From contig CM060733.1 of assembly GCA_030704615.1 (NCBI GenBank), positions 27,156,001 to 27,220,000 of the forward strand: 64,000 nucleotides of DNA, read 5' to 3'. Position 1 is the first letter of the stretch. Each line of letters opens with the position of its first letter. The position numbers and the translations under genes are program-made. The notes below the pieces were generated by a model, which ran no database searches, had not been told where the DNA came from, and saw only the letters and a program-made list of their open reading frames with translations. Below, piece after piece: positions 4,674-56,229 of this stretch. This DNA comes from Takakia lepidozioides (Eukaryota; Plantae; Bryophyta).

Positions 4674-8566
<3,893 letters not shown>

Positions 8567-27965: not shown

Positions 27966-28025
<60 letters not shown>
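27966..28025. repeat. (GA)30 microsatellite
   Basis: Perfect dinucleotide run inside the PPR pseudogene. Confidence 0.95.
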
Positions 28026-28028
<3 letters not shown>

Positions 28029-28296
28029 TACCTCTGGCACTATCCGATTGGTTCGATCAATGGCCTGAAAGGACCCAGCATTGCACAACCCCAAAAGAAG
28101 CATCACCTTTCACAGCCTTTAGCTACAAATCTCCGGAAACTATAGACCCACATACTGCTTTGCAATGATGACATAGAGATGACAAGATGCACAAGATATG
28201 TTTGTACTCTGAATTCTAACCTCGTCAACGTGACCAGCCATAAACACCTCCTAAATCTCTGTTACCATTCCAGCACAAAAGCAATATTATAGAACA

Positions 28297-28326
28297 AACC
28301 CTATTTTAACTAATTCTGGACTTTTG
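28297..28326 (+). repeat. Left TIR AACCCTATTTTAACTAATTCTGGACTTTTG
   Basis: Reverse complement of 51304-51333 at 29/30 positions. Confidence 0.9.
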
Positions 28327-28849
28327 GCTTAAATCCGGACCAAACTTAATATGTATTTGAATTCAAATTAATTCAAATTTTGTTAATAATATCTTGGATA
28401 GTAATGTGTGATTGAACTTTGTGAAATTACAAGTTTTGTCATACTTGCTTCAAAATGTAACATATAAGATGTCCATTTGACATTGAAGTGCTTGTGAAGT
28501 TGCAGTGTAACTCAACAATTCATTGAACGTCGATTGGGAAGTCGAATGATGTAATATTACATTATGTTACAATCACGATAAACAAATGTGTCGAATCGAA
28601 CATGGGATAGACTCATATTACTCTACCATACTTGATATAAGTTGATAGTAATTTTGATTGAATCTTCATGTTGACAAGCACAATATTCATAGACAATGCC
28701 ATTGGAATGATGTTTTGGGTGTGAGAAGGGTAGTAAAATATTAAAATAGCGTGAACATTAGGAAGATGACCTACTAGGGCAGTAAAATAAGGTTTGGGGT
28801 GTAACTAGATATATTAAGTGCAATAAGGTCCAAGTTTGTGGTGACTCGG

Positions 28850-29990
28850 AGAAGGGTTTAGGGTTTTAAAGGGTTTAGGATAGAAAGAGAGAAATAAATA
28901 TGGACGACTCTAAACCTCTGTAGAATGTAAAAATGTAAGGGGAATTTGATATCCATGTAATCATTCTATCATACGTTATCCAACTTGAAAATTAAAGAAA
29001 ACTTCAAGAGAATGATACAAATTTTACAAGAGATAACATGGTAGTACAATAAGGTTTGGAGTTTATTATAAGTAGGGTACTACACTAAGGTTTTGGGTAT
29101 ATGGTAAAAGTAATGGTTTAGGGTGCTAAGGGTCACGCTTAAGCTTGGGTAAAGGATTATTAAGGGAAGGGTAAAGGGAAGGGTAAGGGTTTAGGGTTTG
29201 GATTTAGGGTAGAAAGGGACAAACAAATATGGAAGACTCACACTTGGTAGTACAATATCTTGGTTTGGAGTGTAAGTAGGGTAGTTACACACTAACCTGG
29301 TTTTTGGTATGTTATGGTAAAGAGTACTAATGGTTTAGGGTAGTAAGTGTCAGGCTTAAGCTTAGGGTAAGGATTAAGGCCAGGGTAAAGGAAAGGGTAA
29401 GGGTTTAGGGTTTGGATTTAGGGTAGAAAGGGACAAACAAATATGGAAGACTCACATATGGTAGTACAATAACTTGGTTTGGAGTGTAAGTAGGGTAGTT
29501 ACACACTAACCTGGTTTTTGGTATATTATAGTAAGAGTACTAATGGTTTAGGGTAGTAAGTGTCAGGCTTAAGCTTAGGGTAAGGATTAAGGCCAGGGTA
29601 AAGGAATGGGTAAGGATATAGGGTTTGGATTTAGGGTAGTTCAAAGGGACAAACAAATATAGAAGACTCACACATGATAGTACAATAACTTGGTTTGGAG
29701 TGTAAGTAGGGTAGTACACTAACCTGATTTTTGGTATATGGTAAGAGTAATGGTTTAAGGTAGTAAGTGTCAGGCTTAATCTTAGGGTAAGGATTAAGGC
29801 CAGGGTAAGGGTTTAGGGTTGGATTTATGAGAGTACACAAAGGTTTTTGGTATATGGTAAGAGTAATAGTTTAGGGTACTAAGTGTCCGGCTTAAGCCTA
29901 TGGAAGGGTTAAGGGAAGGGTAAAACGAAGGGTAAGGATTTAGAGGTGATGGTAAAGGTATAAATGGACAAACAAATAGAGAAGACTCGC
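28850..29990 (+). repeat. Subterminal tandem array (~214-216-bp unit, ~4-5 degenerate copies) rich in TTTAGGG-like motifs
   Basis: Anchor gggacaaacaaatat recurs at 29216, 29430 and 29646, degenerate at ~28885 and ~29966; contains gggtttagggtttggatttaggg tracts. Confidence 0.85.
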
Positions 29991-30371
29991 ACTCACTAGA
30001 ACGAGACATTGCAAAAAAACATTTAGACCGGATTGGAAAAGAAGAATCCAGGGGTTGTGCCAGCATTTTTTTTTTTTGTGCATTGTCTGTTTTGTAAGCC
30101 AGAATCCCCCATGTCACGAATATATGTAGATGAACAGAATGTACAGCAGTGCAGAGTCCAACACGGCAGAAAGAAAATAGATGAACGTCCACTGCCCACT
30201 CGAGGTTCATTGCGACAGAAAAAGAAGACGGGAAGGATCACCCAAAGCAAACACGAAGGGAAAGAAGCGTAAAGAAATTTTTATATCTTAAAATGAAAGA
30301 CCGGAAATAACCTCAACATTTAGTCCATGGATGGAAAATGGTTCGCAAGAAGAAAACCTTCAGGTATCTGG

Positions 30372-33300
30372 CTAAAGGTTAGCAACCTCCAAATTCGCGC
30401 GCGCCTTCACTGCTTCCACCGCTGTAATTGTCTTGGTGCTATTTCTTGTCGTATTTTTTTGTGGCGGCATTGTCCACACGACATTGTTCACGTGGATCCA
30501 TTGAGCAGGATCTGGCGGGTTGTACTCCCAAACTTTTGACCAACAGTCCTTGTACCTCTCAAAGTCTGAGGGGTTACCTCCTTTCTTCGGTCTCCACCAC
30601 TCCACCTTCACTTTCTTAAAATTGGGATCTTCCCTTTCTCGGATGACATCTGAAATTGCCATTCCCATCCAGACCGGGCACGTCGTTGGGTCATGAGGGC
30701 GAACGAGCACAAAATACCCTTTCTCAATATCTTTGAACGGATTCAAGGGTATCCTTGGACGCTCACACCTAGGGCCACAGTAAGGTTCTGGAACTTCATC
30801 CTCATCTTCCATATCTTCCAGTATCTGTGGCTGGATGTCATCCCTCCGATGTTTTGAGGACCAATTTGTTTTCGGCCAAAATCCCTCAAGAAACTGAATA
30901 CGATCCGGAATGTCCTGCATTGGCTTATCAAGTTCGGCGAGAATATTTCCCCAGTATTGGTCATATTGTTCCATCACACCCCGGTAATGATCGTCAAGCA
31001 ACATTCCTTTGGTCCAAAAATCTCTGTATTTCTTAATACATTTTTTATGAATGATTGTTTTTCTGAGGAGTCGTCCCTAACTCCCCATATCGGTCTTCTT
31101 GGAACAACATCTGGTTCTCCTTCAGGGAGATATGGAGTCCCATCAGGATTGGACTTCCACATCTTAACGCTGGAGTTTGTAGGAAGCCACTCCGAATCAG
31201 TAGCTGACTTCTTGTACTTCATAACGGGCCAACCATCCGCATCCTTAAAAAATCGAAAGACGTGCATCTCTGAGATCCCGACCAAAGCCTCATTTCCATC
31301 ATGAATACAACCCTTAACAAACTTCTTGAAGTCGCGAACCTCCTGTGTGATTTGAGGAATGAATTGCATATCTTGGGAGATCATGAATGACCTCATCAAA
31401 TCCGGAAGAATGTAGGTGTTGCGTTCCTTTAGCTTCGAGAGAGATAGCTAAAGAATCCGTCAATATCCTCATGGGTGTGCCCGACCATGAGAAAACCAAG
31501 CTGGATCTCTTCAAAGACATCTTTGGCAGTGAGGAGGGATATGAAAGCAAGCATCCATCTGTTCTTATTGTCCTTGGAGGAGTTGTCCATCTGCAAATAA
31601 AGTCGTCTAGGAAGTGGTCGAGCACCACGTTTATCGTGTGGCCTGCAGGGTTTCAGAGCCTCCAAACATCTCGATTTACCTCTCATGAGCGTTTCAAAAA
31701 AATCATTTTGAACTTCAGTGTCGAAAATGTTCCTGGATTCCCGGCATGTCGGCTTTTCCAGTTGGCGCAGGCACCGAGCCAGCAACCCAATTGTGAAGTT
31801 TGAATTGTCTTTCCAGAACTCAAGGGAAAATTGAGCGTAAGCTCCATCTCCGTGTCCGTGCGTAACCATTCCTGTCAATGAGACATGCAACTGACCCAAT
31901 CCGGAGACCATCTTGTTCGTCGTCTGTAGCCTCGGAATAGCCGTTTTCCTATGATCCATCTTATCATGAATAATACATAGGAACTCCTCCGGAACCATAA
32001 CGGACTCATTCCTCCAGCTATGGTACAGCCTTCTGCATGACTCTTGATGCCTCAAGTGCAAATCAAGCGTCCGCTTATGTGCGACCTGTTCGGAACTCCT
32101 CTTAATCGACTTCTTGATCAAGTCCTTGAACATCTCGCATTCTGTGCACTTAGCAAAGGTGCTTCCTGTTTTCCGAACCTCCACGTTAGGAAATATTCGA
32201 TTCCGTATACGGCTTATAGCTGGCTTCGAGACTCCTTTCAAACCGAGCAGTCTGTTTGTCTGCACCCCAACTCCCCAACAATGTCAACGTCCACTGGGCA
32301 GTGGAGGTTTTACAAAGTGGAAGAACCTCCACTTTGAAAAACGAAAGGAGACAACGAATAAAAGTCACCTCGTTGGACTCCTCTCGAATTCTCTTCCAGT
32401 TCATTTCGGGTGGCAAAATTCTCAAAGTATCCCGACGTCCCTCTCCAATGCAACGTGTTTTGTGAGGCATAAGGTCAGTATTGGCATTGATAATGGACAT
32501 AATGTTCCCCTCTGCCTGGAGTGTCCCTGGTCGCGGCCGCTTGACGCCACGAATTCCGTGGAAAGATGACAAACAGCCCTCTTTACTGAGCTTTTTGTAC
32601 TCCATGTAAGTTGACCTTCCAATTCTGTATATTATCCACCATGCTTTCTCACAAACATCAACACCTTCTATCGTAACATACGACCTGCGCGATGACCCAT
32701 CCATAATGTGAAGTCGTTTTGAAACATTCAATCCAAGTTCTCTCCTCTCATCGAATGACGAACCCCAAAATGCAGTACAAATTGCCAAGGTTTTTCTCCA
32801 ATCAAAATACTGGCAGCACTGAAGCTTGCAGCAAGGTTTGCTGCTCACCGACCTCACTTCATCCAAAGTAAGATTTTTCTTGCACTTTTTTTAGTCCTCC
32901 ATATTGGATGGATTTTTCTTCTTAGTAAAATGCCTGTATGCTGCTTTCAATACGCCTGTACCATGGTCGTCATTCTCCATGTCACTGCATGATCGTAGGA
33001 AATTTTCGAGATCAACGGAGAGTATCCGACCATTTTCAAGAAGTCTTGTTTTTGTTAACGGCCATTTCACAATCGACATCAGTGAACCGGACTCTCCAGA
33101 AATTGTTCTAGTGACCAGAACCCCAACATCGTTCTCTCCGAGTTTGTCATTCAGAATGATCTCGTTAGGAATGCATGCTTGAATTCAGCCTTCGAACAGG
33201 GCGTTTCCGTCCTCCCCAAGAAGAAGACACTGCAAGTTTCTCCAATATTCTCTCCCCAGACCTGCAGGCAGATCCCCCCCAGTCTCACCGTTGGACGGAA

Positions 33301-33658
33301 TATCATTGCTTTCAGTGCTTTGTCCTTGATAATCACTACCTTCTGTGATGGAATGACATCCTGGGTTTCTCGGGGATGATGAATCCACAGTTTCATGCGT
33401 GCGAACACAGGACACGTCCCACACAACTGGAGTCCCAATCGCCTCCTTCAATGTGTCAGCATCCATGTGTCGATAAGGCAGAGGACATGAGCCAAATGCG
33501 TCATCACAAAATATCAAGGTAACTGAAATGGTGGACGAACACAAGTGGTGTTTGTGGCAAGTTCCATCCCCAGAAACATTCAGGCAATCTCCTGAGGCAA
33601 CAACTGAAGGAGATCCAGGAAGCGACAGAAACACCCTTTGGCCTATTTGGAACCCCAT
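30372..33658 (-). pseudogene. Sola-like (DUF7869-type) DDE transposase; intron 32260-32368, two in-frame stops and two frameshifts
   Basis: CC..QCC; FAKCTEC; IIHDKMD; LYLQMDNSSKDNKN; FLMVGHTHEDID. Probable start MGFQIG at 33658; stops at 33185 and 32891; frameshifts near 31435 and 31030. Confidence 0.85.
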
Positions 33659-36600
33659 GAAGTTAGTAACCTCCACTGGGCAGTGGAGGTCCAGTAAAAT
33701 CCTATTACTGGACTGAAGATTAACTGAAGGAAAGAATGACTTGCCACCGAAAGGAGAAACTTTAAGTATAACTTTTTTGACGGTTTTGAATGAGAAAACA
33801 ATATGGATTAAAAAAGTAAAGTCAATGTTTGGATCTACACTGGGACTGATAAAAAACAATTGGAATTAAATTGGAGTATGAGGGCGGAGTATAGACTACA
33901 TCTATCGGAACTGTCAGATGAAGTCACAATTGCCAACCTCCACTGGGCAGTGGAGGTTGGATGATATCTGTTGATGAAATAAACCACATGGATGAACAAT
34001 GGATAATGAAGAGGCCCTCTGTAGATGACAAAGTGATTCTATGGATGGATGAATAATAATGTGGCGATTGCCCAGTGGAGGTTTGGGAGTAACTTTAGAC
34101 AAACAAAAGCAAGTTTAGTTGGTGCATATGGAGAGTACACAAAAAATTGAGTATCATACTATCCTACGTGAGAAATGTGCAGTTGACACCTGAGACTAAG
34201 GAAGCAGGGAGAGACTCAGAGGTTGCTTCAGAAGTACCCTATGGGCAGAGTGGTGCAGGATAGGCAAAGAGGTACAGGTTGTCCAGAGAGGTGCACGATG
34301 TCCAGAGAGGTGCGTGAGAGAAAAGAAGCAAGTGAGAGGTTCAAAGTGGGAAGTTGGTGTTGTGTGGATATGGACGTTATATAGAGGTGACATGTAACTT
34401 TCATCTTTGAATCGCTCCAATGGCAGTGTGGTATGCTTTCTCTCTCGGATCGATTTGTGGCCACCGTGGATTAAGGCGGAATCGAACGGCTTATTTCAAC
34501 TCGCAAAATCTTGGCTTCATTGAAAGTGTGCACAATTTTCCATTTATTGACAGCAGCCACTGTCACATTAATTATGGAACAAACGATAACGGCCGCAATC
34601 AGACTGAATTCTATCGTACTTGTAGGTTAGTAGGACTACAAGTCTGGCATCATTATCGTGCGGCTCTGACAGCAGACTGTGGAATAAGTGTGAAGGATGT
34701 CGATTCTGACAAGTGGCCTGGAGAAATGAAGTCAGGCGGCTAATCGCCACAACTAATTCGGGACTGCACATTAACAATCGATCATTATAATTAGCTGGGA
34801 GGAATCCGGAGGTGAACCATAAAGCACTTTGAGATTGTTCTGTTTATATTTATCGTGCTATTACAGTGAATAAAACACTTGGGCAGGGCGGTTCATTATA
34901 TGCCGGCGCATTGCATTGGACAGCGAGGGCGGTGCATTACAGGTGTGCGGAATGCTCTGTCGTGCCTTGCTTGCTTGCACATGTTTAAAGTAGGGATGGA
35001 CCCCTCGTGTTGGGTATCCCTCGATAAATGGGCAGTCCCTATGGTGGCTCTGGACCTTAAATCGAGGAATGCCCGACACGAGGGGCCATCTACTATCCTT
35101 AAAGCCGTATGTCTATCAGGGAATATTGACGCCTGGAGGCTAACAGCCAAAAGTTATTGTGGACGGCTCAATATGAGACAATGATTATACAGTGTGACGA
35201 ATCCGTAGGTACAGCGTTGTGTCCTTTGTTGGCTTCAAATCTATTTTAAGATTTTTGTAAGCGTGAGGGTTGCAGAGTCTGACCAATGGCGTCATTACAA
35301 TCATTTCGTCCTTTTTCATTCGTCTATCCAGTCGTCTGTCCAAACGTGTGTGCATTCGTGGAACAAAAGTTGAACTAATTTCATGTGTGGATGCACAATA
35401 TTAATGATAGTTTGCGTGGATGGGGCAGAACATCCATTTGGACCGCGCGACCGTTCGATTTCGGACGGAGGCGATGGTTCAGATCATCCGCTTATAAGGG
35501 GTGCGCTCTTTGAGCCCGGCCTTTGGGCTTCCCATTTTCTACACGTAAGCGCTGCGCGAGTGAGAGCTTAACAGTTGAGAGAGGAGAGCGTGAAAAGAAG
35601 AGTTTTGGAGCTCATTTTGCAGCGACTGGACACTGGAGCGTGGAGAGAAAGAGCAGACTTGGCCGAGTGCAGAGAGAGGAGAGGGTGAAAGGTGAGAGAG
35701 TGAAATAGGCGAAATTTGAAGAGCGGGGAGGAGAGACCGGACACTGGCGAGTGGAGATTGACGAGTGTAGAGGCGAGAGCATAGTGCAATTACCGGCAGG
35801 CGGAGGTGCGGAAGAGAGTATCAAATGAAGGACTGTGGTTGCAGGGGCACCAAAATGGCCGGCACAAGCAGGTACAACATAAAAAACTCCCTCTTTTCGT
35901 CTTCTATTTCACGTTTTGTGTTGGCCTGTTCTCAGTTTTGTGTTGGCCCGCTCTCGATTCATGTGGCATGTTCAAGATTCAATTCGTTTCGATCTTGCTT
36001 CATTCTCTGCTGCACTGCACTGTCTTCAGTGCTTCAGTCCGTGCTTTAGTGCACATTAGGTTTTTGTTTCATTGTTTGCTTCGTTGTTTGCTTCAATGCT
36101 GTTTCATTCTCTGTCAATTTATTTCACTCCTGCTCCATTCTGTGCTTCAGTGCATTCCCGAGTCATTGCTTCACTGTTGTTTTTCAATTCACCAATGGTT
36201 TGTAGGGTGGTTTTGTGTGGTGGTTTTGTGTGCAATTGGGTTTGTGTGTGCTTGTTCTGGTCGATTAGGGTAATGGTTTAGGGTGGCGGGAGATTACCGT
36301 GCTGGTTGTATTGCTTGTTTTGTTCATTGTGGTGGTTTATTGAGGACAGTGGTTTAGGAAATGCCCGGATGTTTATTTCTCAACCGTTTTCTTGATCCCC
36401 AAATCCAGCGTTAGTTGATGCATTTCTTCCCATTCACGATTCTGAAAGGAAATTTTCATTTCTTATCCAATTATATCGAATTCGGCAATTCTGAAAAACC
36501 ACGATAGCCTAGTCTACTTGTATTCTACAGTAGACATATGCTAACAGGAGGCTTCGTGCAGGCCAGAGTAGAGTATTCGTAGACCCATGTCATACACATG

Positions 36601-36885
36601 AGCAACCAGAAACTGGAACCTCCACTGCCCAGTGGAGGTTCGTGTGAATTCTGTATGTGGAAGCTGAAAGACATTTATTTAAAGTAAGGACGAAATCGGA
36701 TAATTACGGGAAAATTGAAATCAGTTTGAGACGATGTGGGAACGAGTGATGGAATCATATGTGTAACATTGTAAGTGTGACACATACTTTTCAACGAGAC
36801 CGGGATACGATAATTGGGAACCTCCACTAGTTCGATATTTCTTTGGGTCAGCCAGTTACACACTCTGATTAGTTTTTATGTCAGA

Positions 36886-37538
36886 ATGAGAAAGAGGAAC
36901 GAGGGTGGGGAACCGGTGTCTGACGATGAGTACAAGACAGCCAGATTAAATTGGAGCAAGAGACGGTGTTTGGTAGACGTGATAGAAGCGGACCGTCCAG
37001 ATCAAAAACATGGTGTTTCGGAACCAGATGAAAAATCCAGTTGGGGGTCTACTGAGCCGAACAAAGTGTCTATCAATGACGAAAATGTGACTGTAGAATC
37101 CCCGCGGAACGCATCCGAATCTCCGAGCAATACACCTGAAGTCATCTGTAAGGATACCCTGGCGGAAATAAGAGAAAGCGTTCATGTAAACAATGATATC
37201 AACGGATCTCCTGCCCACTCCCAAGATTATCCGACATACACCCCTTCAGACTATTCCCCAGACACATTGGCGGCGATACGAGTGACCGTTTTTGGATATC
37301 CAACATCTCCGGGTTCCTCGCCAGCATCTTCTGAATCCAATCAGGATCTGAAGGATATTATCCTCCAAACTTCCTCCTGGACACTGAAACGAGCGGGGGA
37401 GTCCTGGAACTATTGGACGTCTCCGGATCTCCAGGATACTCCCCTGCGTCTCCTGATAGTATCACCGGATCCCCAAAATATACCCCTCCAGACTATTCGC
37501 CTGATACACTCAGAGAGATAAGAATGAGCATTCTGTAG
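36886..37538 (+). pseudogene. Cargo exon encoding S/P/Y-rich repeats (YSPDTL.EIR, YSPASPD); frameshift near 37340
   Basis: Acceptor tcag at ~36884; repeats NTPEVICKDTLAEIR / YTPSDYSPDTLAAIR / YTPPDYSPDTLREIR. Confidence 0.5.
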
Positions 37539-37983
37539 TTCTTGGGTATATAATCTAGAATCGTCTGAATATAGTGCGAGAAGTTCCTTAGTATATTTTG
37601 GACGAATTAGGTTCGAAGATTTCTATTGTAGATTAGTCATGTTTGAGGATGATGTACTCAATGGCTCCTTAGCCTCATTTTCATTAAAGTTTTTTTCTTC
37701 AACATCTGAAAAAAATGGAGGATTTCTCATTTCATGTAGAAAGAGTCGTACATACGAACCTCCACTGTCCAGTGGAGGTTTCTCATTTCTGGAATGATGG
37801 ATGCTAGTAAGAGAGATCTTGTTATTTGATTATCTAATAAATTTGTGTTTGGTTGTAACAGAAGACATCCTACACCACCAGATTGCGTCCCGGGATTGAT
37901 TGGAGATATTTGTGGCGCATTCGTATGCTGGAAGTCCTCACATTTCAAAACTGAGCATACCACTATTTTTTAGTTTAACCCAG

Positions 37984-40900
37984 AGGTGACAGATTGGGGC
38001 ATCGTGTCTGTCGGTACACCTCCTGATCACAAACTGTCTTTTCATTACAGAAGTCTTGGAGTAATAACAGACTTAAAATACGCAGAAGCTCTCGATATAG
38101 AGCTTGAATCTGAAGAGGAAAACCCGATGTTGGTTTTGTTCCTGCATGAGGATGCGAGAACCCCCAGGACGTTTGGTTTCAAAGTGGAGGTGGGTCGTCT
38201 GAACAAGTCGTTGATGAGTGAATGCGTTGCACTGGGTTTTAGATTTCCAGACGAGAGCTCTGTATTTACAGACGTAGGTTTGTCGAGGGCCTGGAGTATT
38301 TTTCTGGATCTTCTGCACGCAATGGGGAACGACATTCGCAAGAAACGAGCACTAGAGAAAGCATCAAAGCCGAAGAGGGGAAAACGCAAGTTGTCGACAG
38401 CCGGCAATGATGACAATGAGGCCGGGACTTCCGCAGGAAAGAAGAAACAGAAGGAGGATCAGGATCCAGCATTGATGTCAGATAACAAGAGACCTAAAGC
38501 TGGGGAGATTTTTGACAAGGAAAAATGCGAGAAGATGGAGGAGAGGCTCACGAAGGAATACAATGATGTATTTCCATTCGGATTCAAGAGTACCTTCCTT
38601 GTGAAGGTTTCCATGATGGAACTAGCTCCAAGGAGCATGGTTTACAGGCCGTTAAATATCAAGCATAAGGACGAAGTGAAAGCGCGACTCTTCCAACTTC
38701 ATTTGTTCGACTCCAAACATCCGGTGTATCTTGCGCCAATCAACCCTTCCAATCCCGAGAAGATTGCTTCATCGCGACCGAAACAATGGAAGGAGATGGA
38801 CGTATCAAGGTTCTTCGTAATTGGTGGACAACACACCATCGTGGCAGCAAAGGTAATGGACTTCATTTCCTCCCAGACCTCTCTTTTAACGAACCTCCAC
38901 TGGGCAATGCAGGTCCGTGTTGAACTACAAAATTGGATATGTCCCCACACTTTCAACTCTCTCACCCATTTTACATTAACTGTAGCATGAACTTCTCGAG
39001 GATCTTTCCGACAGCGAACTGAAGGAGTACTACCGGGAGTGGCCTACGAAGATTGCATGGTCTACCGATGAACAAAGACTCCTGAAGTTGTCAAAGCTCC
39101 TCAACGATCCCAATAAGGCGCAAAAATTTGATACAACAATGCCGGAGAAAGTTGCGCATGCGTGAATGCTATTCAACCTGAGGGGGAAGCCAAGGAAATA
39201 CAATGATCACACCACAAAGTCCGAGATGAAACAATGGAAGGTATGCATTTATGGAATCAAAATCTACTATTCACATTCATTTTATGCTAAAGAATACTTC
39301 TGTTGTCGGAGTGACAACTAATTTATCCCTGAATGAATGTGCAGGAGTTCATGTTTGCCTGTCATTTGATACTAGAAATGGGTAGCATTAAGGAGGCAAT
39401 GGTCCTGGTACTTTGCGACGACGACGTTTGGAAGATCTGGGAAGATGTTTTCAAAAACTAGGAGCAGGGAAAGCTACTTGACCCGCTTGGGATACAGTAC
39501 AAGGGTGAACAGCAACAGCTCACGAAATCTGCTATCGCAAAGCTGCAAGGGTTGAACAGATGGTAGCTGATAAAAGTTGCGCAGAAAATCCTGGACCTGA
39601 AATTGACCATTCGAGATTACAAAGGTCAAGACAAATCAATTCAAGGCATGAACAAGTACATAGACGACATGAAAATGCGCCGGTTTATTGTCGACGATGT
39701 GATGGAAGTGTTGGGGTGGCCTCGGAGGAGAAACAGTGTACAGAACCGTACACTAAGGACGAGTGGCGTAAAGTGAAGAGAAAGTACCACTGCAATAAGA
39801 CAGAGTTATCAACATTTAAAGACAAACTGGGGACGGATTACATCCAAAGCAAGATCAAGATGAACATGGAGACAAAATCACTCACGGCCGTTTTTGTTAA
39901 GTACGTCTCCTCCATCAAGAAAGCTTATGAGGATAGAGAGGATGCCATGGCAATTATTTCAGCGAGTTTCAAGACTCATTACGCTATCATGGGTGGAGAA
40001 ACAAAATTCGCCGATGCCAAGTCCCGTCTGCGACTCGCACCGAAGAAACGGTTTGACAACATAGCGATGGTGTTCGTCAATACAGTTTCTGAAGACGACT
40101 CTGTCGTATTTGAGTCCAATGATTACGTGAACATACTGGAGGCCTTTGTGGCTCAGAAAATGAACACGAGTGCTTTTGTTTTCTTCTCGACGCAACCGTC
40201 CTCGGCCAATCTGGTCTCCTACATCCGAAATGGTCCCGGAAGAACATCGTATCTTGTCCATCAGGGATTTTATGTTCCGGGAGAGTATGAAAATATTGTG
40301 CTGTTTTTCCAGCGACACCTGAGGAGATGCAAAATCCGGACAAGCACATCTCCACCGTACTGTTAATCGAGCCAATACAACCCGATTCTGGAAGGGCCCT
40401 CTGAGAAGCCATCAGCTTTTGAAGAAGAGTGCAAGACTTATAATCATGAGCTACGAGCTGACACATACGACTATTTGGCCTCCATGTTTTGTCGAGACGG
40501 GATGTCCGCTGTCAACATCTTCGGAGGCGTGATGTTGACGTACGCCCTTCATGTAAGTGTAAAACCTTTTTGCATTTTAAATACGAATTTTACATTTTTG
40601 ATCCAACAAGTCCTCTGTTTTACTGACTGGGTTTATCTGCGGGCAAGAAACATTCGAGTGCTTGACATCAACCACTCAACCAAGAAAAAGTTTTGCAAAG
40701 GAAAAGTTGAAGCTAATTTTAAGAAGCTTCAAATTGAGAATGACAATGTTGCTGAAGAGGTTGACGGCGGAGACGATGATGAGGATGAGGAGGAGGAAGA
40801 TGAAGACTTGGAAGAAGGAGGCGGACATTTCGAATACGTAGAGGAGGACGAGGGCATCAATGGTAACGGGGACAACGAGGGCCACAATGGTGACAATGCA

Positions 40901-41410
40901 GACTGTTGGGAGGCTGGACACCTGTATGTGATTCATGACTTCAGAACTCAGTCACAGGATGGTATTGAGAACATCACCCAAGACGTTGCGGTCCACAATG
41001 TCGTGATTCTAGATGGGGATTCCTCGAGTTCAAGTGAGAGAACTAAGAGTAATCCTGCTTCACCATCAAGGGGTGCGGAGGCGAGCTCAATCGAGGTGCG
41101 CGGCAATTTGATTGGGAGTGTAGACGATTGGTTCAAACCTGTAGAAGGGGACGAGCCGGCGCCAATGTCCCCGTCTCCCGCCAAAGAGAGGGTAGAGAGA
41201 GCGAGGACAAAGAGCCCGTGTCCCACAAAAGACAGTGGATACAGAGGGAGGACTAAGAGCCCGTCCCATGCAAAAATGGACAGTGGTGACAGAGGCAGGA
41301 CTAAAAGCCCGTCTCCAAGAAAAAACAGCGGAGGCAGAGGCCGAACTCAGAGCCCAACTCGCTCTCAAAGTGTCTCCCAGTATGTCAATTTGGATGTAGG
41401 TAACGAATGA
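37984..41410 (+). pseudogene. Multi-exon cargo gene: NLS, ParB/Srx-like domain, degenerate beta-class methyltransferase-like region, acidic tract, RGRTKSP repeats
   Basis: Exons ~37984-38852, 38986-39240, 39345-40552, ~40642-41410. Motifs RPLN..H..E, FFVIGGQHTIVAA and ELR..Y..L...FCRDG..AVNIFGG; premature stops at 39163 and 39459. Confidence 0.6.
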
Positions 41411-41540
41411 TACCTGGAGATTTATGGTGTCTTCAAGCATTATAAATGGAACAAATTGTGTGTATTGCATCTGGTTGTGTTCTGGTTGTGTTTTTGGCAA
41501 TACCTGATCTGTATCTTAATATTTCCCACATTCTTGAAAT

Positions 41541-44500
41541 CACTACAACAGATCGTGGTATATGTGACTGTATATATGACTATCCCGTAGTCATAAATGG
41601 TACATATGACTTCTATGACTTAAAGTCGTGCAAACCAAGTCAATTCAATGAGTACAGTATGGTCGGTCATGGATGACTGCAGTCAGATGAACCAAGTGAT
41701 ACATCTCACTGTCATGTGGCAGTCATACGTACTTCTACCATACATGACTTAGTGTGCTGCTGCAAACTGTACACGTGTCTATTTCTAATAAGTCCAGGAG
41801 GTTTTGTGGATGTGTGCCATATGGCGTCTCCCGAAACTGCCACGTGGTATATCCATGAGGAGGATCTGCAGTCATTATCCTGACTACAACCATGCTAATA
41901 TATGGATACGTGACATATAATGAGGAGGTCTTGCAGTCATTGTCATGACTACAAACATCCTGATATGTGGACACGTGGCATGTATTGAGGAGGTCTTGCA
42001 GTCATGATCCTGACTATGACATGCTGATATATGGACACGTGGTGTCATATGAGGGGTTGTTTTGAACTTTTAAATGTATTGGACAAGCAGAGCCACGACT
42101 ATGCTTATCTCATTAGGGTTAGTAGAGATTAGGGTTAGTATTATTCAATACTAAACAAAGAGAAGAACAAAGGGAAGAACAAAGACACAAAAAATGACTC
42201 TGCAAAATGAATGTTTTATTCATAGGCAAGAATCACAGGAAAGAACATAAAGACAACAGTAGATGTAAGAGCTTCTCTTAAACTGCTGCCAGTCAAATTT
42301 ACAATATAGCACCTGAGTCCCAAAATCTGCTCCTCAAACAATAGTATGACAAAGTGCAAAGGACACTACATATGCACTGAAGATAACAACAGATGTAAAA
42401 TGCGTATGTCTTTCTACATTTGCTACTGTTCCAGCATAACAACAAATCAGCATGATAGGGTGCACCCACATTTTGCATGTACATGTCCACAAGGGTACTG
42501 TTCAGAATGACATTTGGTAAAATTCCAGCTCTGACAATGTTGCGATGGACTTATGTGCCCTTTCCAGAGCTGTCAGGCTTGCACATGCATCGCAAATGCA
42601 CAAAAATATGATGTGGTCAGGCTTCACCCCTTCCCCCATCATTTGATCATAGGTCTCCAAAGCCTCCATACCACGTCCGCCCTGCTGTGCATACCCTGCA
42701 AGCATCGCGTCCCATGACACCACATCTCGTTCAGCCATAGTGTTGAAAACTCCCTTTGCATCCTTAATGCACCCACATTTGGCATATATGTCACCAGGGC
42801 AGTGTTCAGAATGACATCCGGTACAATTCCAGCTTTGGCGATGTCACCATGGACCTCTTTCTGGCCCTCTTGGATGAATCTGGACCCACACTCTATCCCT
42901 GCTCCTTCAGCTATCCATGCCTATGCATAAATCATGCATACATCCTTGCCTTGCTGCTAGCAGCTGACGATGACAGCCTAGATTTATTCTAGGAAACACC
43001 CAACTCAACTTATCACACTAGTTCCTATGCTCAATTGCATATGCTACTCTCTATAATCAGACAGACATTCACCTTCTTGCCTGGATTGTCCCACCATTGA
43101 CTGGGTAAGAAAAGTATTCATTCCACAGCTTCTCCTCATCTCTGTTACATGTTTCTGGATGCTTTCCTGTTGTCACATTCGCAGTATCATGTCAAATCAC
43201 TCCAAACTATCAAAGGTTCACTCAACCAGCTAGCATGCAGAATTCAACATGGAAACTTAGGGTCAATTATGATAAGAAGGAAAAACAGGGTGAAATGTGT
43301 TGAAGAAGGTGCCTTCATTAGTAGTGCCTGATTTATCAATTCCACCGCTACTGCTGCAGCTTCCAATTGACCATCTATCCATGCAGGTTGCTAGTAGCTA
43401 TTGATCCACAGGGAATCATAGGAGCTTGAAGTCCGGCCCTCTTCGATGAATCTGGACCCACACTCTATCCCTGCTCCTTCAGCTATCCATGCCTCTACCA
43501 AAATCATGCATTCACCCTTGCCTTGCTGCTAGCAACTGATAATGAAAGCCTTGATTTGTTCTAGGAAACACCCAACTCAACTTATCACACTAGTTCCTAT
43601 GCTCAATTGCATCTTCTACTCTCTGTAATCCAACAGGAATTCATCTTTTTGCCTTGATTGTCCCACCGTTGACTCGGGTCAGAAAAGTATTCACTACAAC
43701 AGAACGCTCCCAGGCTTGCACACGCATTGCAAACACAAACAAATATGATGCGGTTGGGCTTCAACCCTTCGCGCAACATTTGCTCATAGGTCTCTAAAGC
43801 ATTCCTACCAACCCATGCTTGGTAAATCCTGCCAACATTATATTCCACATGATCAAAGATCGTTGAGGGATTCTATTGAACACTTGGTGAGCATAGATGT
43901 ACACCAGGGGAATGTTCAGAATGACATCTGGTACAATTCCAACTTTGATAATGTCACCATGAACCTCTTTGACCATTCCCAGGGCTGCTAAGCTCGCATA
44001 TGCATATTATAAACACAAATGAACATGACCCGGTCTGCCTTCATCCCTTCCCATATCATTTGCTCTTAGGTTTCCAAAGCCTTAATCCCATACCCATGCT
44101 GCACATACCTTGCAATCATGGCATTCCAAAACACCACATCTTGTTCAGCCATATTGTCGAACTCCCCCTTTGCATCAGGCTTGCTGCACCCACATTTGGC
44201 ATACATGTCCACCAGGGCAGTGTTCATAATGACATCTGGTACAAATTCAGCTTTGATGATGTCACCATGAACCTCTTTCCCCTTTCCTAGAGCTCCTAGG
44301 CTTACACACACATTGCAAACACAAACGAATGTAAAGTGGTTGGGCTTCTCCCTTTCGCACATCATTTGGTCATAGTTCTCAAAAGCCTCCATCCACACCG
44401 TAACTGTGCATATCCTGCAATCATCGCACTCCATGACACCCACATCTTGTTCAGGCATACTGTCAAACACTCCCTTCATACATGTCCACGAGGGTATTGT

Positions 44501-46032
44501 TAAGAATGACATGTGGTATATTGCAACTCTGACAATGTCGCCATGGACCTCTTTGCCCTTCTCCAGAGCTGCCAGGCTTGCACACACTACAAACTATCAA
44601 AGGTTCACTCAACCAGTAACTTACAGAAATTCAACCTGAAAATTTAGGGCCAATTTTGATAAGAGGGGAAAATAGGGTGAAATGTGTTGAAGAAGGTTGC
44701 CTTCATTAGCAGTGCCTAATTTATCAATTGTGCCGCTGCTGCTGCGGCTTCTAGTTCACCATCTACCCATGCAGGTTTCTTGTAGCAATGGATCCACAGG
44801 GAATCATAGGTAGTCTTGTGCTTGAAATCCGGCCCTCTTCCAGCAAACACCCCAACCCTAATGATGAGAGGGAAAAACAGACTAAAACAGGTTGAAGAAA
44901 AGGTGCCCTCACCAATTTAGGGCCGATTCTGATAAGAGGAGAAAACAGGGTGAAATGTGTTGAAGAAGGTGCCTTGAGTAGCAGTGCCAGATTTTATCAA
45001 TTGTGCCGCTGCTGCAATTTCCACAACTGAACTGACAGAGATTGAAACGCAGCTTGCTAAGACCAAGCTGACTCTCCCAAGAACCTTGTAAACATTAGGA
45101 AGAATACCAAATCATAACAAGAGCCCAAGAGCCCACATTTGCAGGATGGACTAACTTAGAACTTTACATGGTACATTAAGAAAAAGCCACACCTTGTGAT
45201 TGCGGTTGTCCTACCATCGTGAAGAAATTCAGGACCGAGTCTGATGAGAGGTCAAAACAGGCTGAAATAGGTCGAAGAAGAAGGTGCCCTCACCACATTG
45301 TCCTCGACCTTGTGTCATGACCCATGGAGGATTTGACTGACCATGAACACAATAGGACCTCTTAAGTGTGTTGCTTGTGTCTGTAGTCAGGTAATGTCGT
45401 ATTGGTCTGTGAGAACCACCACGGTGCAGCTGAGCGGGCATCGATTGAAACACGGACTGCTAAGACCAAGTTGTCTCTCCCAATAACCATCAGGAAGAAT
45501 ACCAAATCATGGTACTAACAGGAGCCAAGAGCCCATTGCGATTGCGGTGCAGGTTGCGCTTCGCCCCTTCCTCCATCAGTAGCTCAAGAATAGGTCTGCA
45601 AAGCCTTCATCTCGTGCCCCTATCCAGCGATCATTGCGTTCCATAACAGCTCGATACTAAGAAACCGCGCAGGAGAAAAAGAGAAAGAAAAACTAAGTCC
45701 CAACCCTCTCATGCGCAACCCTATAAGTAATTTTTTTTTTAAAATTAACCTTTTGGCTACCAGGCTTGCACTAGAAGTCATTCTGGCGACTATTTGGTGG
45801 TGAGCTCGCGCTGGTCAACCATCGTTGACCAACCATCCCTCTAGTGCGGAGCCATGCAGTCATGACAACGTCTACCAAAGTAGTCGCCCAGAGGACTACG
45901 TAGTCACATAGTCATTTCAACGACTACGTGAAGCCCCATTTGATCCAAAAATACAGGGAAGTCATGGTCAAAGTCAGAAAAACCATGACTACCACGGCTC
46001 GGCAGTCAGATATACCGCGATCTGTTGTAGTG
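41541..46032. mobile_element. Nested non-autonomous CACTA (Pack-CACTA, 4492 bp) carrying PPR fragments
   Basis: TIR CACTACAACAGATCGTGGTATATGTGACTG (41541-41570) matches 46003-46032 at 28/30; TSD AAT; subterminal AGTCA-N6-YGACT repeats at both ends. Confidence 0.92.
42440..45650 (-). pseudogene. Mosaic of PLS-class PPR motif fragments captured in the CACTA
   Basis: DVVSWDAMLAGYAQQG..EALETYDQM..EGVKPD; NTALVDMYAKCG; interspersed with internally duplicated non-coding blocks. Confidence 0.85.
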
Positions 46033-46400
46033 AATTTACATGTGACTGACGGTAAGAAAACTCGTATAGATCCATGAACGGAAATTGGAGGAAATCACAC
46101 AAACCCGGACAGAATCCATCGCGACTCAAACAGTGAGGAGGCAGGTGGACTTCAATAAGGGCCAGCCCAACTGATCCGGTCAAACAAACAACCTCCACTG
46201 CCCAGTCGACGTTGCGAGATGGAGGAGATGAGCCGGAGATGGTCGTTGCTCACCGCGAAGGAAAAGAGAGCGAGCAGCACCATCAGCAAATTCGGAACCC
46301 CTCCCCGAAACATGTATACACCTCATAACCATCTTAGCTATGTTCTTCTTTGTCCTTCTTCTAGTTTTCAAAATAAATTAATTGTTCTGTTATTCCACAG

Positions 46401-47133
46401 GATGATATGATTCACCCTCCAATCGACTATCACAAATCTGTGAACCCACAGGATTGGTATCGCCTCTCTGAGGGACCGAAAGGATCTCGACCACGATACT
46501 ACGTCCTGGTTCTTGACGTCGACTACCTTGGTGAGGTTTACATCCGAGATGCCCTCCCGCAACCCATCCTTGTGTGTGCGCTGGAAAATTCAAGCTTGCA
46601 GTCCGAAATGGGTTGGACGACTTCCTGAAATGGGTCCTTAAGCATTTTGAGGTCTACTTTTGGAACACTGGACCGTTAGAAAATGTCTTGGATATAGGGC
46701 TGGCTTTGTTTGGAAGAAGGTTTTACAAGGTCAGGGAATTCAACAATGAGAACTGCGTGAAGCATAGACAGACGTTCAGTGCCGAATGGCCCAAATATCC
46801 GAAAGCGCCAATATATCTTAAACGTCTCTACGACCTTTTCACTGTAGACGACCCTGTAGCGTACAAATCAAACACACTTCTTATCGACACTGTAGAAAAT
46901 ATGTATAAGTCGTACTTGAACCCAAAGTCGCTCGGTATCATCCTTCCAAAATATAAAGCGCTCGTCGACCCATACAAGGACAGGTTTCTTCTTGATGAAC
47001 TCAAACCGCACCTGGAAGAGTTGCGGTTATCCGGAAAAGACGCTGATATATTCAACGTGGAAAAACCCATAGGATGTCCACCGTATAATGACCAAAGGTC
47101 AAATGCCTCTTGCTATGGGATTTGCAGTGACAG
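46401..47133 (+). pseudogene. FCP1/NIF (HAD-fold CTD-phosphatase-like) domain 1
   Basis: VLVLDVD..; VRNGLDDFL..VLKHFEVYFWNTG; YLKRL; NTLLIDT; frameshift near 46580. Confidence 0.7.
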
Positions 47134-47307
47134 GTTTATCTTAGAAAACAAAAATTTCCTGACGCTTCATTGGAACAGTTTGAAACGTAAATAGCTGCTC
47201 TAGATTTTCATGAACCTCGACTGTCAAGTGGACGTTTCTCCCAATGTCAATCTTGTCCTTGGTTTATCTTGATTACCACCTGAGTGGATGTATGAATTTC
47301 TCACAGA

Positions 47308-48037
47308 TTGCAGCACCAGTTTCTCCAGTTGCGAAAGGATTGTGCTTGATAATTTTTGACCTGAATGGAGTTTTGTGCAAAGTCTTGAAGCACCAGAAGA
47401 GCTACCGTGTCCCCGAATGTCCGAGACAGACTACAGAATACCAGCTCTTGTTGGATTTCGACTTGTCTTTATGCAGGAAAAATATCGTGAGATGTGGACA
47501 GAGTTGAACAAACATTTCCGTCTAGGTATATGGAGCTGCATGATGTACAAGAACTTGCAGCCTATACTGGACTTTATGCTTTGGGGTCTTCCTCAGCCAA
47601 CATTCGTTATGTCTTAGGAAGATTGTATCTCCTGTCCTACTTCTGTCCACCCTCAATTTATATCAGGATACGACCCGCTGAGTCTGTTCTTGAAGCCATT
47701 GATGACTGTCTGGCAAAGATTTGGTGGTCAGTACAACCTGAGTAACACTCTACTTATTGACGATTCAGCTATTAAGTGTGTGTTGAACCCGCCTGAATCC
47801 TGCCTGATTCTAAAATCGTTTGAATCCGTTGAGACGGACTCTTGCTATCTCCAGAAGGTTCTTCAGAAATATTTGCTTGGAATAAAGAAATCTCACACGG
47901 TTTCCAGTTATCTCAAGGAAAAGAGGATAGGACTTAAGCCTTGTCAGAATGTTTCCACCGATCCCAAGTTTAAGCCTCTCCTGGATTATGTTGATGATTC
48001 TAATTACGGGAATCTCCGATATGATGCTTCAAAATAA
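47308..48037 (+). pseudogene. FCP1/NIF-like domain 2
   Basis: LIIFDLNGVL; FRLGIWSC; S*EDC; FLKPL..VW; NTLLIDDS..K..LNP. Confidence 0.8.
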
Positions 48038-49669
48038 AGATTTTATTGATCAACCACGTCTGTGATTCAATGTTTATTTTTTATTGGTTTTTTTTATAGG
48101 TTGTATTGTTTTTCCAGAAAAACTGTTGTGTACTGTGATTTCCTTTTCAATCTGAATTGACATGGAATTGTTTGGTATTTCCTAGTCTCATCCAAGCGTT
48201 TCTCCACCCCATACCATCCCGATCCTCTGAGATACAGGCCTTCTCCGAAACTCGTCTCGGGGGCTTTTTCAAATCCGACAACCTCCACTGTGCAGTGGAG
48301 GTTATCCTGTGTCTGTACATTGACCTTGTAAGTTCGTTTCTGCATGTTCATGGCGATGCTGTTGATGCCAACTTCTTGTCGGGACTTCCATTGGAATCCT
48401 CCATATCATAAATTCGTCTACAGAGGGACAACATTCACACTACTGTTGAGATTTCTGTCATCGACGGTGAAGCATCATCCAGGCACTTGGCTTCCCTTCA
48501 ATTGCACGACCCTCTTCTTCAGTCCATTCCTGAAAAGGATGTTCTGTCGCAGGATTGTTTAGGATTGAATGTCGAAGATGGAAGCCAACTTGTCAAATGT
48601 GTAGGGGATTTCGTGGACCTCACTCTACAATCCTCACCCTTCGTGTTAAGTGTCAATGGTGTGAAATCTACCTCGAGAATGTCATCCGTTGAGGACGCGG
48701 CTGAGGCTGTGGCTCCACAGCACAATGTTGCATCTCTTCCCTCCTTCTCTCCCCAGCACGAAGGTTGGACAGCCCAAATCAGAAGAAGTCAGGTAAAATT
48801 ACTTATATCTGAATTCTAACTCGTCATTTTGTTTTCCTTAGTACTGGGTCTGATGTTCTTGTTTTACTCCAGACCAGAAAATATGCGGATTGTGACCTTC
48901 CTGTCAAACGACGTCTTCATTGGAAATCTGTTCCGAGGTAATCCCTTCGTTACGTGTGAATTCCATTCAGGATGTGGAGTGCTCAAGGGACAATTTCCAT
49001 TCCGTTCCCCTTCTCCGAAACCCTTTCGACGAGGACAAGGACGAAACTTCAATTACAACTTCTGGGCTTCCCGACCCTGCGGTGTTGGCGCAATGTTCTG
49101 CACCGAGGAAGTGGAATAGGGCCCCCAAACCATTTCCATCTCTTCTACAAATCGATTACACCGGAGAGAAGCCCTTCGTCAGAGACAAAGCAGACTCGAG
49201 GAAGAAAAGGAATACCTCGGACATACCGGGGTCTCGTCAAAACACGTCCATTAGGATGTCAAGCCCGCCAGCGAGACTTTCCAATAAGGCGACATCAGTA
49301 TTATTCGATATCATTTCTCCACTTTCTTCTTTTTTCTGTTCGTTTGGTTATGCACTAATTAACTCCATCTTTTCTCAACAGGCGGGGATGCAGCACGATA
49401 CCTTCATCAATTTCCCTCCGTACAAGGTACTTTCCTGAACCTCCGCTTGGCAGTCGACGTTCATCTTCTTAGCAATATTAACCCTCCTCTTTAAACATTC
49501 CAAGCCCATAACATTGTGCAGTATTTTGCCATTTTCTGCACAATCGTGTTGATCTTCCATACACTCAATCATTCTGGGTCGTGGGTATTTTTCATGGCAG
49601 AAACACTAATGTCAGTGTGTGATTAACCTGCTCAGGATAACTTTGTCTCTCATCCTTTACATGCAACAG

Positions 49670-50400
49670 CGGGGAAGAGGAAACGGATGTTGTTAATTTT
49701 AAGTGTCAACGGACTCCTCTACTACCGGCCACCCCCAACCGGCGGTGAACTATTTAAGGAGAAATTTCGTTTCAGGAATGTGACACTTCAAGTTCCTGAC
49801 AGACCGTTTGTGGTGCCTCGGCCTGGAGTCTTGGAGTTTCTGGACCTTGCATTGAAGCATTTTCACGTGGCCATTTGGTCATGTGCTGATAGAGGTGTTC
49901 TTTGTAGGATGTTGGAGAGCTTCGTCCCCACGAAAATAGCGAAGAAGTTTTGCTTCATATGGTCTGCTGAGGATTGTAAGGATACCACCGGTTATATGAG
50001 GCCCGGGATGAAATATCTCGTGAAGGATATCCGAAGTGTTATTGTCAGGTACCTGGTAGACCATTTGCTACGCAGGGGCAAATAATTCTTGTAGATGATG
50101 AGCCATCAAAAGGCCTGCGAAACCCACAAAATATTGGATTCTTCCCTTTCTCATTCAAGCCTTCACCAAACGGATTGCATGACCGGGATGATATGACAAA
50201 AGCAGTGTGGCCATATATATCAGAGATGGTTGGAGCTTCAACAGTCGTTGATTACATTAGCGAGAACCGAGCAAAGTGTTCTCATAAGCCTATTGGTCGA
50301 GACCATGCCTGCTGGGCCTAGTATGGAAGATATCTTGATCCTCGTATTTGGATCCCACAACAAAAGGAACCTGATTACCTTGGTAGGCACGTGGATCCCA
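49670..50400 (+). pseudogene. FCP1/NIF-like domain 3
   Basis: LLILSVNGLL; PRPGVLEFL..FHVAIWS; FIWSAEDC; after a frameshift IILVDDEPSKGLRNP. Confidence 0.75.
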
Positions 50401-51303
50401 CTCTTCTCTTCTTTGTTCATAATTTGATTTTCCAATTCTTTTGCAGCTGCATTTGCACTCTTACCTCAACATATCCATATGCAAACTTCCACTTTGGGCC
50501 TAACATTTGTCATTTCCATCGCCTCTCCCCAGTTACATTCAAGGAACGAATTCTAAAAGAGGAACAAGAGTTGCGTGATTGGGAAGAATGGCGGGCGTGC
50601 CGGGAGGCTTCAAGGGCATCAAGTAGAGTTGGCAGTAACATTTCAGATGACAATGTCAGCCGGTTTCACCTTCTTGAAAGTATCTCCGTGTCATCTGGAG
50701 CGGAGACCGTTGCAAGTGGCTGTGGTAACCGGACGCGTCTTCGGACACATGCCTTGACTGTGAGCCGTTTGGGAGGCTCAGTATTATTAATGAGTTAGTA
50801 TAAGCCGTAACGGTTCTATGCCTTCAGCATCAATGGTTTGTATGGCATTAAGTCCATGAACGGATGGACAGTTGACATTCATTTTTCTGTTGGTCCATCG
50901 TCTTGAATGATATAATCTCAAATAAAATATGAATGTTTCATATTATCAATGAACTCCCGACAGACTCGTTTTTCCATGTTGTCCTCTTAATCACATCCCA
51001 TCATTGTTTCATATTTGGTTCTGCCATTATTCCATGTTTGTTTCTGGATGTCATTTTGGATATCGGAGCTCTCATCATTGTTTGATTCATTGCATCCTCC
51101 CATTCCTTTTAATGAACGTCAACTTGGCAGTGGATGTTCATCTAAGACCACAATACATACTTGTATTTTTGCGTAGAATGTGTGGAGGATTACATAATTT
51201 GTTGTTATATAGTGCACAAATAGTCAAATAATTATAGATATATCTCTTTATTTCTATTATAGATTATAATTATTCATATATCTTGTATTATTTCTAGACC
51301 AAA

Positions 51304-51333
51304 CAAAAGTCCAGAATTAGTTAAAATAGTGTT
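51304..51333 (-). repeat. Right TIR of the giant element
   Basis: caaaagtccagaattagttaaaatagtgtt followed by TSD aaca. Confidence 0.9.
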
Positions 51334-56000: not shown

Positions 56001-56229
56001 CACTAGGCAACACCCCTTCCATTGAGCAATTTCGGCATGCCACTTGAGCGCCCACAGCTACCAGTCACTGCATTCCCAAGATGATGTCGTACCTTGCGCC
56101 ATCCCAAACCTCAAAATCTACCTCAGTGATGATCCCTTGCATTGTAACAGGGATCTCCAAGCTTCTGTTGTTGGTAGATCATGCATCTCCATTGGGCAAT
56201 AGAATGGTACTGGTGCCAACCTCCTTCAA
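53021..56229 (-). pseudogene. Gypsy pol (PR end, RT, RNase H, integrase, chromodomain), disrupted
   Basis: [23 protein letters not shown]; CTDASDLAIGAVL; GHPG..FFWP; DRDSKFTS; GPFKI; EFLIKWKNYP..STWE. Stops and frameshifts present. Confidence 0.92.

Follow-up and report, generated by a model that had tools for sequence, protein, structure and literature searches.

Demonstrations that transposons counteract silencing in a sequence-specific manner come mainly from the VANDAL/VANC and Spm/Mutator regulators. A giant transposon with accessory genes is Sola1-1_Ec32 of Ectocarpus. According to its description (PMC12477816), this element is 21,549 bp long, has AACCG termini and a 4-bp target-site duplication (TSD) biased to end in A, finds its best match in the moss Repbase entry Sola1-1_PPa, and carries a gene combining ParB and N4C/N6A-methyltransferase on the strand opposite to the transposase; the same source gives GGCGG as the ends of Sola2-1_Ec32. 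A preference for AWWT targets has been named a Sola1 hallmark (PMC3845634). Binding of ParB-type accessory proteins to their own element is, in the 2025 algal papers, conjecture only. Here, we analyzed a stretch of 64,000 nucleotides from the moss Takakia lepidozioides (GCA_030704615.1, contig CM060733.1, positions 27,156,001 to 27,220,000 of the forward strand; hereafter, the window), in which a Sola-type DNA transposon occupies positions 28297-51333. We consider the chances about even that this decayed giant land-plant Sola1 cut-and-paste transposon carries a VANDAL/VANC-like self-recognition and anti-silencing system, in which dispersed 24-bp palindromes would be the sites and a ParB-like cargo protein the reader.

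The element is delimited by terminal inverted repeats (TIRs) that agree at 29 of 30 positions (left, 28297-28326, plus strand, beginning with 5'-AAC; right, 51304-51333, minus strand) and are directly flanked by a perfect TSD, AACA, at 28293-28296 and 51334-51337. The ends given in the initial annotation were reproduced on re-reading, and its sizes on recomputation: 23,037 bp in total and 18,542 bp (about 18.5 kb) without a nested CACTA element. The left TIR fits a lineage-wide TIR profile, which was seeded from 11 ends and matches just the two known ends in the window. The possibility that the TIRs belong to two separate short elements was rejected, given that these are the sole two profile matches and that the TSD is common to both. 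Reading the ends as those of a CACTA element (the right TIR contains CACTA) was rejected as well: in that register the flanks show no 3-bp duplication, and the relatives begin with AAC. The left end, including the TSD, also reads AAACCCTA.

The Sola1-type DDD transposase gene (DUF7869) lies on the minus strand at 30372-33600, with an approximate 5' end and an intron at about 32368-32261. It matches DUF7869 with E=2.6e-34, and the three acidic motifs, IHDKMD, QMDN..KDNKN and GHTHEDID, are intact, which bears out the minus-strand Sola-type transposase previously annotated by its D..DN.(K)NKN..GHTHEDID motifs. Compared by eye, the order of motifs (CC..CC, MPH, C..C, MD, DN..NKN) is the same as in the Sola1-1_Ec32 transposase. 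The AACA target fails AWWT, and the target sites of the relatives are AT-rich, with flanks that are only partly AWWT. However, Sola1-1_Ec32 departs likewise and is nevertheless filed as Sola1, so that AWWT is a preference rather than a rule. The 5'-GRG termini of Sola2 and the TTAA target of Sola3, both taken from the initial annotation, differ from the AAC ends and varied targets found here. The window element combines the features of the Sola1-1_Ec32-type giants, as far as these are described: AAC termini, a length of over 10 kb, and a divergent ParB-methyltransferase gene, of which the methyltransferase part is weakly supported. It fits the Sola1 branch of Sola1-1_Ec32 and Sola1-1_PPa, a placement made by the published descriptions, the transposase tree covering close relatives only. 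The AAC ends and the non-AWWT target, which the initial annotation read as marks of a new lineage, thus belong to an already named Sola1 branch. The initial annotation was right in assigning the element to the Sola superfamily with a 4-bp TSD. Conversely, its treatment of AAC and AACA as a misfit to Sola1, and hence its distinct lineage, are not supported: Sola1-1_Ec32 deviates alike, with AACCG ends, a 4-bp TSD biased to end in A, 21.5 kb and a divergent ParB-methyltransferase gene.

The element is a real, multi-copy Sola-type transposon. In sequencing runs carrying the same species label, read contigs are tens of times deeper over the element than over the unique flank at 27987-28185, suggesting tens of copies, although depth is not equal to copy number; a deep contig covers 28642-29057 at 98% identity (6 substitutions and one gap). 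We found 80 metagenome loci with a transposase alignment, which, going by sample identifiers, are taken to be mostly from Sphagnum-type moss samples. About 40 of them have a 5'-AAC(A/T).. end, usually just 3' of the transposase, some being the same element in different samples. Perfect 4-bp TSDs were found in four elements, namely the window copy (AACA), L014 (TCAT), L049 (ATAT) and ctg130200 (CAAA), whereas those of L048 and L055 are mismatched. The ctg130200 element, a nearly intact relative from another assembly, is 21,851 bp long, begins with AACCG, and has a transposase about 50% identical to that of the window. The window copy is dead: compared to an intact relative, its transposase gene has at least two premature stops and two frameshifts, and there are about a dozen further lesions in the cargo. 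Most family contigs have an extra base near 31038, so that this frameshift is private to the window copy.

The proposed binding site is a palindrome of 24 bp, in which two inverted half-sites of 11 bp are separated by a 2-bp spacer. Ten copies were found at up to 3 mismatches, compared to 0.00 expected, and 12 at up to 4 mismatches. All 12 are within the element (P about 3e-7), none is in the nested CACTA, 11 of the 12 are non-coding (P about 5e-4), and several are spaced by about 1.0-1.2 kb along much of the element; there is roughly one to each intron or gap between genes. The first (30184-30207) lies some 170 nt past the transposase stop, where relatives have a palindrome of their own; the second (32286-32309) is in the transposase gene, within the intron preceding the catalytic exon, the third (33668-33691) in the transposase 5' region or an intron, and the fourth (33935-33958) upstream of the transposase. 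On the cargo side, palindromes are found upstream of gene A (36617-36640), in its introns 1 (37757-37780) and 2 (38892-38915), and probably in its exon 6 (46190-46213), followed by copies between FCP1-like domains 1 and 2 (47213-47236), between genes B and C (48280-48303), in the intron at 49427-49669 (49438-49461), and downstream of gene C (51115-51138). The palindrome of the initial annotation is confirmed by these 12 copies, of which the one at 46190 is probably exonic. Deviations from the palindrome fall repeatedly on the same positions of the half-site, and none is offset by a matching change (0 compensated versus 20 uncompensated changes), so that the palindromes fit protein-bound DNA half-sites; a role as RNA hairpins was rejected on the same count. 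A second, different hairpin at 32313-32336 adjoins palindrome 2 in the transposase intron, and the core GTGGAGGTT is common to both.

Related families have palindromes of their own, which resemble one another among members of a transposase clade and differ from clade to clade. Where a family motif can be recognized, it is found again in the intron that precedes the catalytic exon and shortly beyond the stop of the transposase; L001, L002, L008, L087, L089 and L093 have their family palindrome in the homologous transposase intron, and in ctg130200 each cargo intron or gap examined contains one palindrome. It should be noted that this positional claim rests on family-motif scans: in an unbiased test for the best hairpin in the transposase intron, some loci were significant, and most degraded Sphagnum-type copies were not. 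At 1600-8400 of L089, a Sola piece in which tandem arrays hold its own palindrome 46 times is fused to a bacterial mraZ/mur operon; this is probably a chimeric contig, and is no evidence of a bacterial host.

The distribution of the palindromes can also be read as pointing to the transposase itself, which would use them as internal enhancer or self-activation sites, while the cargo does something else. The palindrome sequence follows the transposase tree; palindromes cluster directly upstream of the transposase in L001, L047, L048, L082 and L093, of which L048 seems to be free of cargo; and transposases are able to activate their own copies in a sequence-specific manner (bioRxiv 10.64898/2026.08.24.746577). 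Against this, the TIR, where the transposase cuts, is near-constant across the lineage in which the palindromes are wholly different, palindromes also occupy the cargo introns, and the ParB fold is a natural reader of a dyad site, paired in Bostrychia with inverted repeats and an unrelated transposase. We consider this explanation unlikely. In L048, the 7.1-kb stretch at 1782-8904 is a TIR-bounded relative with palindromes, no detectable cargo and no matching TSD; it is a derivative formed by deletion, the product of a collapsed assembly, or an indication that the palindromes are read by the transposase.

Canonically, ParB bridges DNA or spreads along it. The ParB-like protein could accordingly be a mechanical aid with no part in silencing, which compacts a 16-19 kb element for synapsis of its ends or tethers the excised piece to chromatin; the unusual length of the element and the spacing of palindromes at about 1.0-1.2 kb along much of it are in line with such a function. 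The arginine of the GxxR box needed for nucleotide binding is, however, missing, and three conserved FCP1-like domains, the avoidance of exons and the retention of CpG would be left unexplained, making a purely mechanical role improbable.

Returning to self-recognition by a cargo protein, the reader would be encoded by gene A, one of the divergently transcribed cargo genes. Read by hand, GT-AG junctions with phases matching the reading frames link, on the plus strand over 36886-47194, a CTD-like, a ParB, a methyltransferase-like, a linker and a first FCP1-like region; two of the acceptors, those of introns 4 and 5, carry mutations or are uncertain in the window copy. Exon 1 (36886-37534, frameshifted) is rich in Ser and Pro and has motifs resembling the C-terminal domain (CTD) of RNA polymerase II (YSPASP, YTPxDYSPDT twice, and YPTSP; five clustered matches in 260 nt). 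It is followed, after intron 1 (37535-37861), by exons 2-3 (37862-39240, with an intron at 38853-38985) for a ParB/sulfiredoxin-fold domain with GGQHT in place of GxxR; exon 4 (39345-40552), which resembles beta-class amino-methyltransferases, has motif IV as FVNTV and motif I as NIFGG, and is degenerate, with stops and frameshifts; exon 5 (40640-41399), an acidic, Ser-Pro/Arg-rich linker; exon 6 (about 46050-46313); and exon 7 (46401-47194, frameshifted), encoding FCP1/NIF-like domain 1 with the motif DVDYL. FCP1-like domains 2 and 3 each come after stops and look like separate plus-strand genes: gene B (47292-48037, broken; motif DLNGV) and a probable gene C (48424-50798), in which linker exons, domain 3 (49670-50320, SVNGL) and a last exon have uncertain joins. 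A minus-strand gene at 48100-49430 was rejected in favor of plus-strand GT-AG exons. Judged from these exon models, the cargo probably comprises three genes: a spliced fusion of CTD-like, ParB, pseudo-methyltransferase and FCP1 parts, and two genes with FCP1 alone. The multi-gene divergent cargo of the initial annotation is thereby retained, with a ParB-like and three FCP1-like regions and a weak methyltransferase-like one, while its five coding regions are taken as about three genes.

The domains were searched exon by exon. A ParB model (pLDDT 66) gave 5 matches at Z>=2 among 48,161 chains in a structure search, all of the ParB/Srx fold (KorB, sulfiredoxin, SerK, SbnI and PadC; Z 2.5-3.4); the scores are low and the set is consistent, so that the predicted ParB/Srx fold in gene A is supported. 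The Atlas features of the region are DUF6551, DUF3723 and ParB_N. An exhaustive search with the ParB exon found 17 matches, a word-index search none, and the alignment is too variable for a scan of loci. The arginine of the box II GxxR, by cited definition needed by ParB for nucleotide binding, is missing throughout the family (GGQHT, GQHS, GQHI, GQYT). Neither the ParB-like nor the methyltransferase-like exon has a match in Pfam, PHROGs or NCBIfam. The FCP1/NIF-like stretches match PF03031 with E=5.6e-8, 2.6e-4 and 7.1e-6, and the closest NCBIfam model for a homologue is HAD_IIID1; sequence searches of PDB with these domains were blank. The DxDx(T/V) motif is present in 0 of 7 FCP1-like domains (DVDYL, DLNGV and SVNGL in the window; DMNGL, EIDGL, CVRGL and DLNGV in relatives).

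For exon 4, motif IV precedes motif I, and the exon aligns collinearly with intact homologues (E 0.08 and 0.016), although BLASTP did not align it to a homologue; the order and a poor homologue model, with non-significant matches including RlmJ, CcrM and M.PvuII, tentatively suggest a relationship to beta-class amino-methyltransferases. An alternative is that gene A encodes an active methyltransferase for N4-cytosine or N6-adenine which marks the DNA of its own element, as proposed for Ectocarpus; this reading would draw on those structural matches, on the activity predicted in PMC12477816, and on the palindrome cores of the relatives. The latter resemble type II restriction-modification sites in L002, L092, L093, L089, L082 and L050 (AGATCT, AGGCCT/GAGCTC, CGCG, GGCC), and raise the idea of a dead methyltransferase domain serving as reader. 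The catalytic (D/N/S)PP(Y/F) and FxGxG motifs are, however, degenerate even in intact homologues: motif IV (DPPY-type) is VNTV in the window and DTTS in P0155 and P0156, and motif I is NIFGG, NIWGG or DAYSG. An active enzyme is accordingly very unlikely.

The cargo is dedicated, inherited machinery, as the initial annotation held in calling it dedicated element machinery, rather than random host capture. The cargo of ctg130200 has the order ParB, methyltransferase-like, linker, NIF, NIF, NIF, as in the window, with identical phase at the introns common to both and with domain 3 best matching domain 3. The order ParB, methyltransferase-like, NIF is found in L003, divergent ParB and/or NIF cargo occurs in L014, L049 and L065, and each family has its own palindrome. 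A chance, Pack-type uptake of host genes, with palindromes as relics of small insertions, is largely refuted and scarcely credible: the FCP1/NIF domains are of host type and the window copy is full of lesions, but domain order, triple FCP1 and intron phases are kept where the transposase is only about 50% identical, and the palindromes have no TSDs and occur, with differing sequences, in homologous introns. Intact ParB and methyltransferase-like frames of low CpG (0.38 in L003) are found in the short contigs L003 and L091, with neither a repeated palindrome nor a transposase on them; these are possibly domesticated copies.

CpG is retained in the element: its observed-to-expected ratio is 0.76 (block bootstrap 0.70-0.82), compared to 0.40 in the nested CACTA, which was inserted later, and 0.44 in a young Gypsy element whose long terminal repeats (LTRs) are 97% identical. 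Nearby host genes, at 0.71-0.74, are on the same level as the element. In ctg130200, the ratio is 0.8-1.1 over most of the element versus 0.5-0.6 in its AT-rich insertion.

Taken as a mechanism, the anti-silencing system would work as follows. The transposase would move the element; the gene A protein would bind the family's palindrome as a dimer, as ParB does on parS, and would act as a non-catalytic scaffold, a role suggested by the degeneration of the ParB arginine, the methyltransferase motifs and the DxDxT motif alike. Its FCP1-like domains and CTD-like tail, aided by the FCP1-only genes B and C, may engage the CTD chemistry of RNA polymerase II, so that cognate copies would stay transcribed and poorly methylated: sequence-specific anti-silencing that is VANDAL/VANC-like in action, with unrelated parts. 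In its favor are the ends and TSDs, the many copies, the conserved divergent cargo, the ParB fold, the palindromes confined to the element and specific to each family, the CpG ratios, and the published precedents. Several observations weigh against it. The ParB Z-scores are low, and a helix-turn-helix DNA-binding domain was not identified in gene A; the model of the methyltransferase homologue has a pLDDT of 39 and a best Foldseek E of 0.045; there are few CTD-like motifs, some of them internal repeats, and ctg130200, L003 and L091 have none; and L048 has palindromes with no detectable cargo between its TIR-like ends. Sphagnum-type relatives are depleted of CpG inside (0.2-0.4) like their flanks, and in L002 CpG is lower inside than outside; the CpG signal is therefore indirect and not universal. 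A stronger version, which we regard as possible but doubtful, is that of a second, independently evolved anti-silencing system encoded by land-plant Sola1 elements. A catalytically dead ParB-methyltransferase scaffold would read family-specific, parS-like palindromes present in almost all introns, and would recruit pseudo-CTD-phosphatases and a mimic of the CTD to take over polymerase II CTD signalling; the element would be left unmethylated, and the protein-palindrome pairs would form an orthogonal code across families.

If anti-silencing of this kind holds, parts of bacterial partition and restriction-modification would have been recycled as a eukaryotic epigenetic self-tag, the polymerase II CTD would be indicated as a transposon target, and orthogonal protein-DNA pairs would be possible for targeted activation in plants. 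The plant version offers a sharp 24-bp site, several families with different sites, the nearly intact ctg130200 and relatives in moss samples.

Further features of the window were observed. Toward its left end, the element has subterminal 214-bp tandem repeats (29081-30011, plus strand) rich in telobox-like TTTAGGG; the first 1.8 kb of the element has 11 TTTAGGG/CCCTAAA motifs, compared to 1 in the following 11.4 kb, and the repeats could recruit telobox-binding proteins. The nested non-autonomous CACTA (41541-46032, in gene A intron 5; 34-nt arms, 3-bp TSD AAT) is a Pack-type element packed with pentatricopeptide repeat (PPR) fragments and does not belong to the Sola1 system. Similar PPR pieces lie to the left of the Sola element, at about 27600-27900; their read depth is extremely high, which suggests that PPR sequences have undergone a very large expansion in this genome. 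A chromodomain Gypsy retrotransposon, the one with 97% identical LTRs, is at 52443-58270, and host genes duplicated in inverted orientation (alliinase/TAR-like and S1-like, about 91% identical) bracket the cluster of transposons at 14800-20400 and 59200-63700.

A giant Sola1 with a divergent ParB-methyltransferase gene, and the proposal that a ParB binds inverted repeats of its own element, are already published for algae. For a land-plant counterpart that has three degenerate FCP1 domains, dispersed family palindromes and CpG retention, we found no paper in a literature coverage that was incomplete. Sola1-1_Ec32 (PMC12477816) is alike in its giant size (21.5 kb), AAC termini (AACCG, as in ctg130200), 4-bp TSD biased to end in A and opposite-strand ParB and amino-methyltransferase gene, and differs in its TIR of 282 bp, compared to 30 bp in the window element; the latter has degenerate methyltransferase motifs and adds three FCP1-like domains and CTD-like repeats, and dispersed intronic palindromes are unmentioned in the passages of the description that were consulted. 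The Plavaka elements of Bostrychia with PAG2/PAG3 (bioRxiv 10.1101/2025.02.11.637652) are also giant (17-19 kb) and encode a ParB-like accessory protein, for which inverted-repeat units have been put forward as binding sites; they have an EnSpm/Plavaka transposase, a ParB fused to a 2OG oxygenase, repeats in tandem arrays by the gene, and no FCP1 domains. Bacterial ParB/parS and the phage and plasmid fusions of ParB with N6/N4-methyltransferases (10.1101/2025.10.10.680097) share the ParB/Srx fold, the methyltransferase-like fusion and the dyad sites, whereas the window system is without ParA, lacks the GxxR arginine and an identified helix-turn-helix, and has a spliced eukaryotic gene. VANDAL/VANC of Arabidopsis (PMC5735166), an accessory gene on a large DNA transposon, has a MULE transposase, an unrelated VANC protein and non-palindromic motifs of 8-9 bp in tandem repeats, and was shown by ChIP and EMSA, whereas the window system is a prediction from sequence. 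The two have in common motifs in introns and in intergenic and terminal non-coding DNA that differ by family, and such family-specific motifs in non-coding DNA are what we found in the window element and its relatives.

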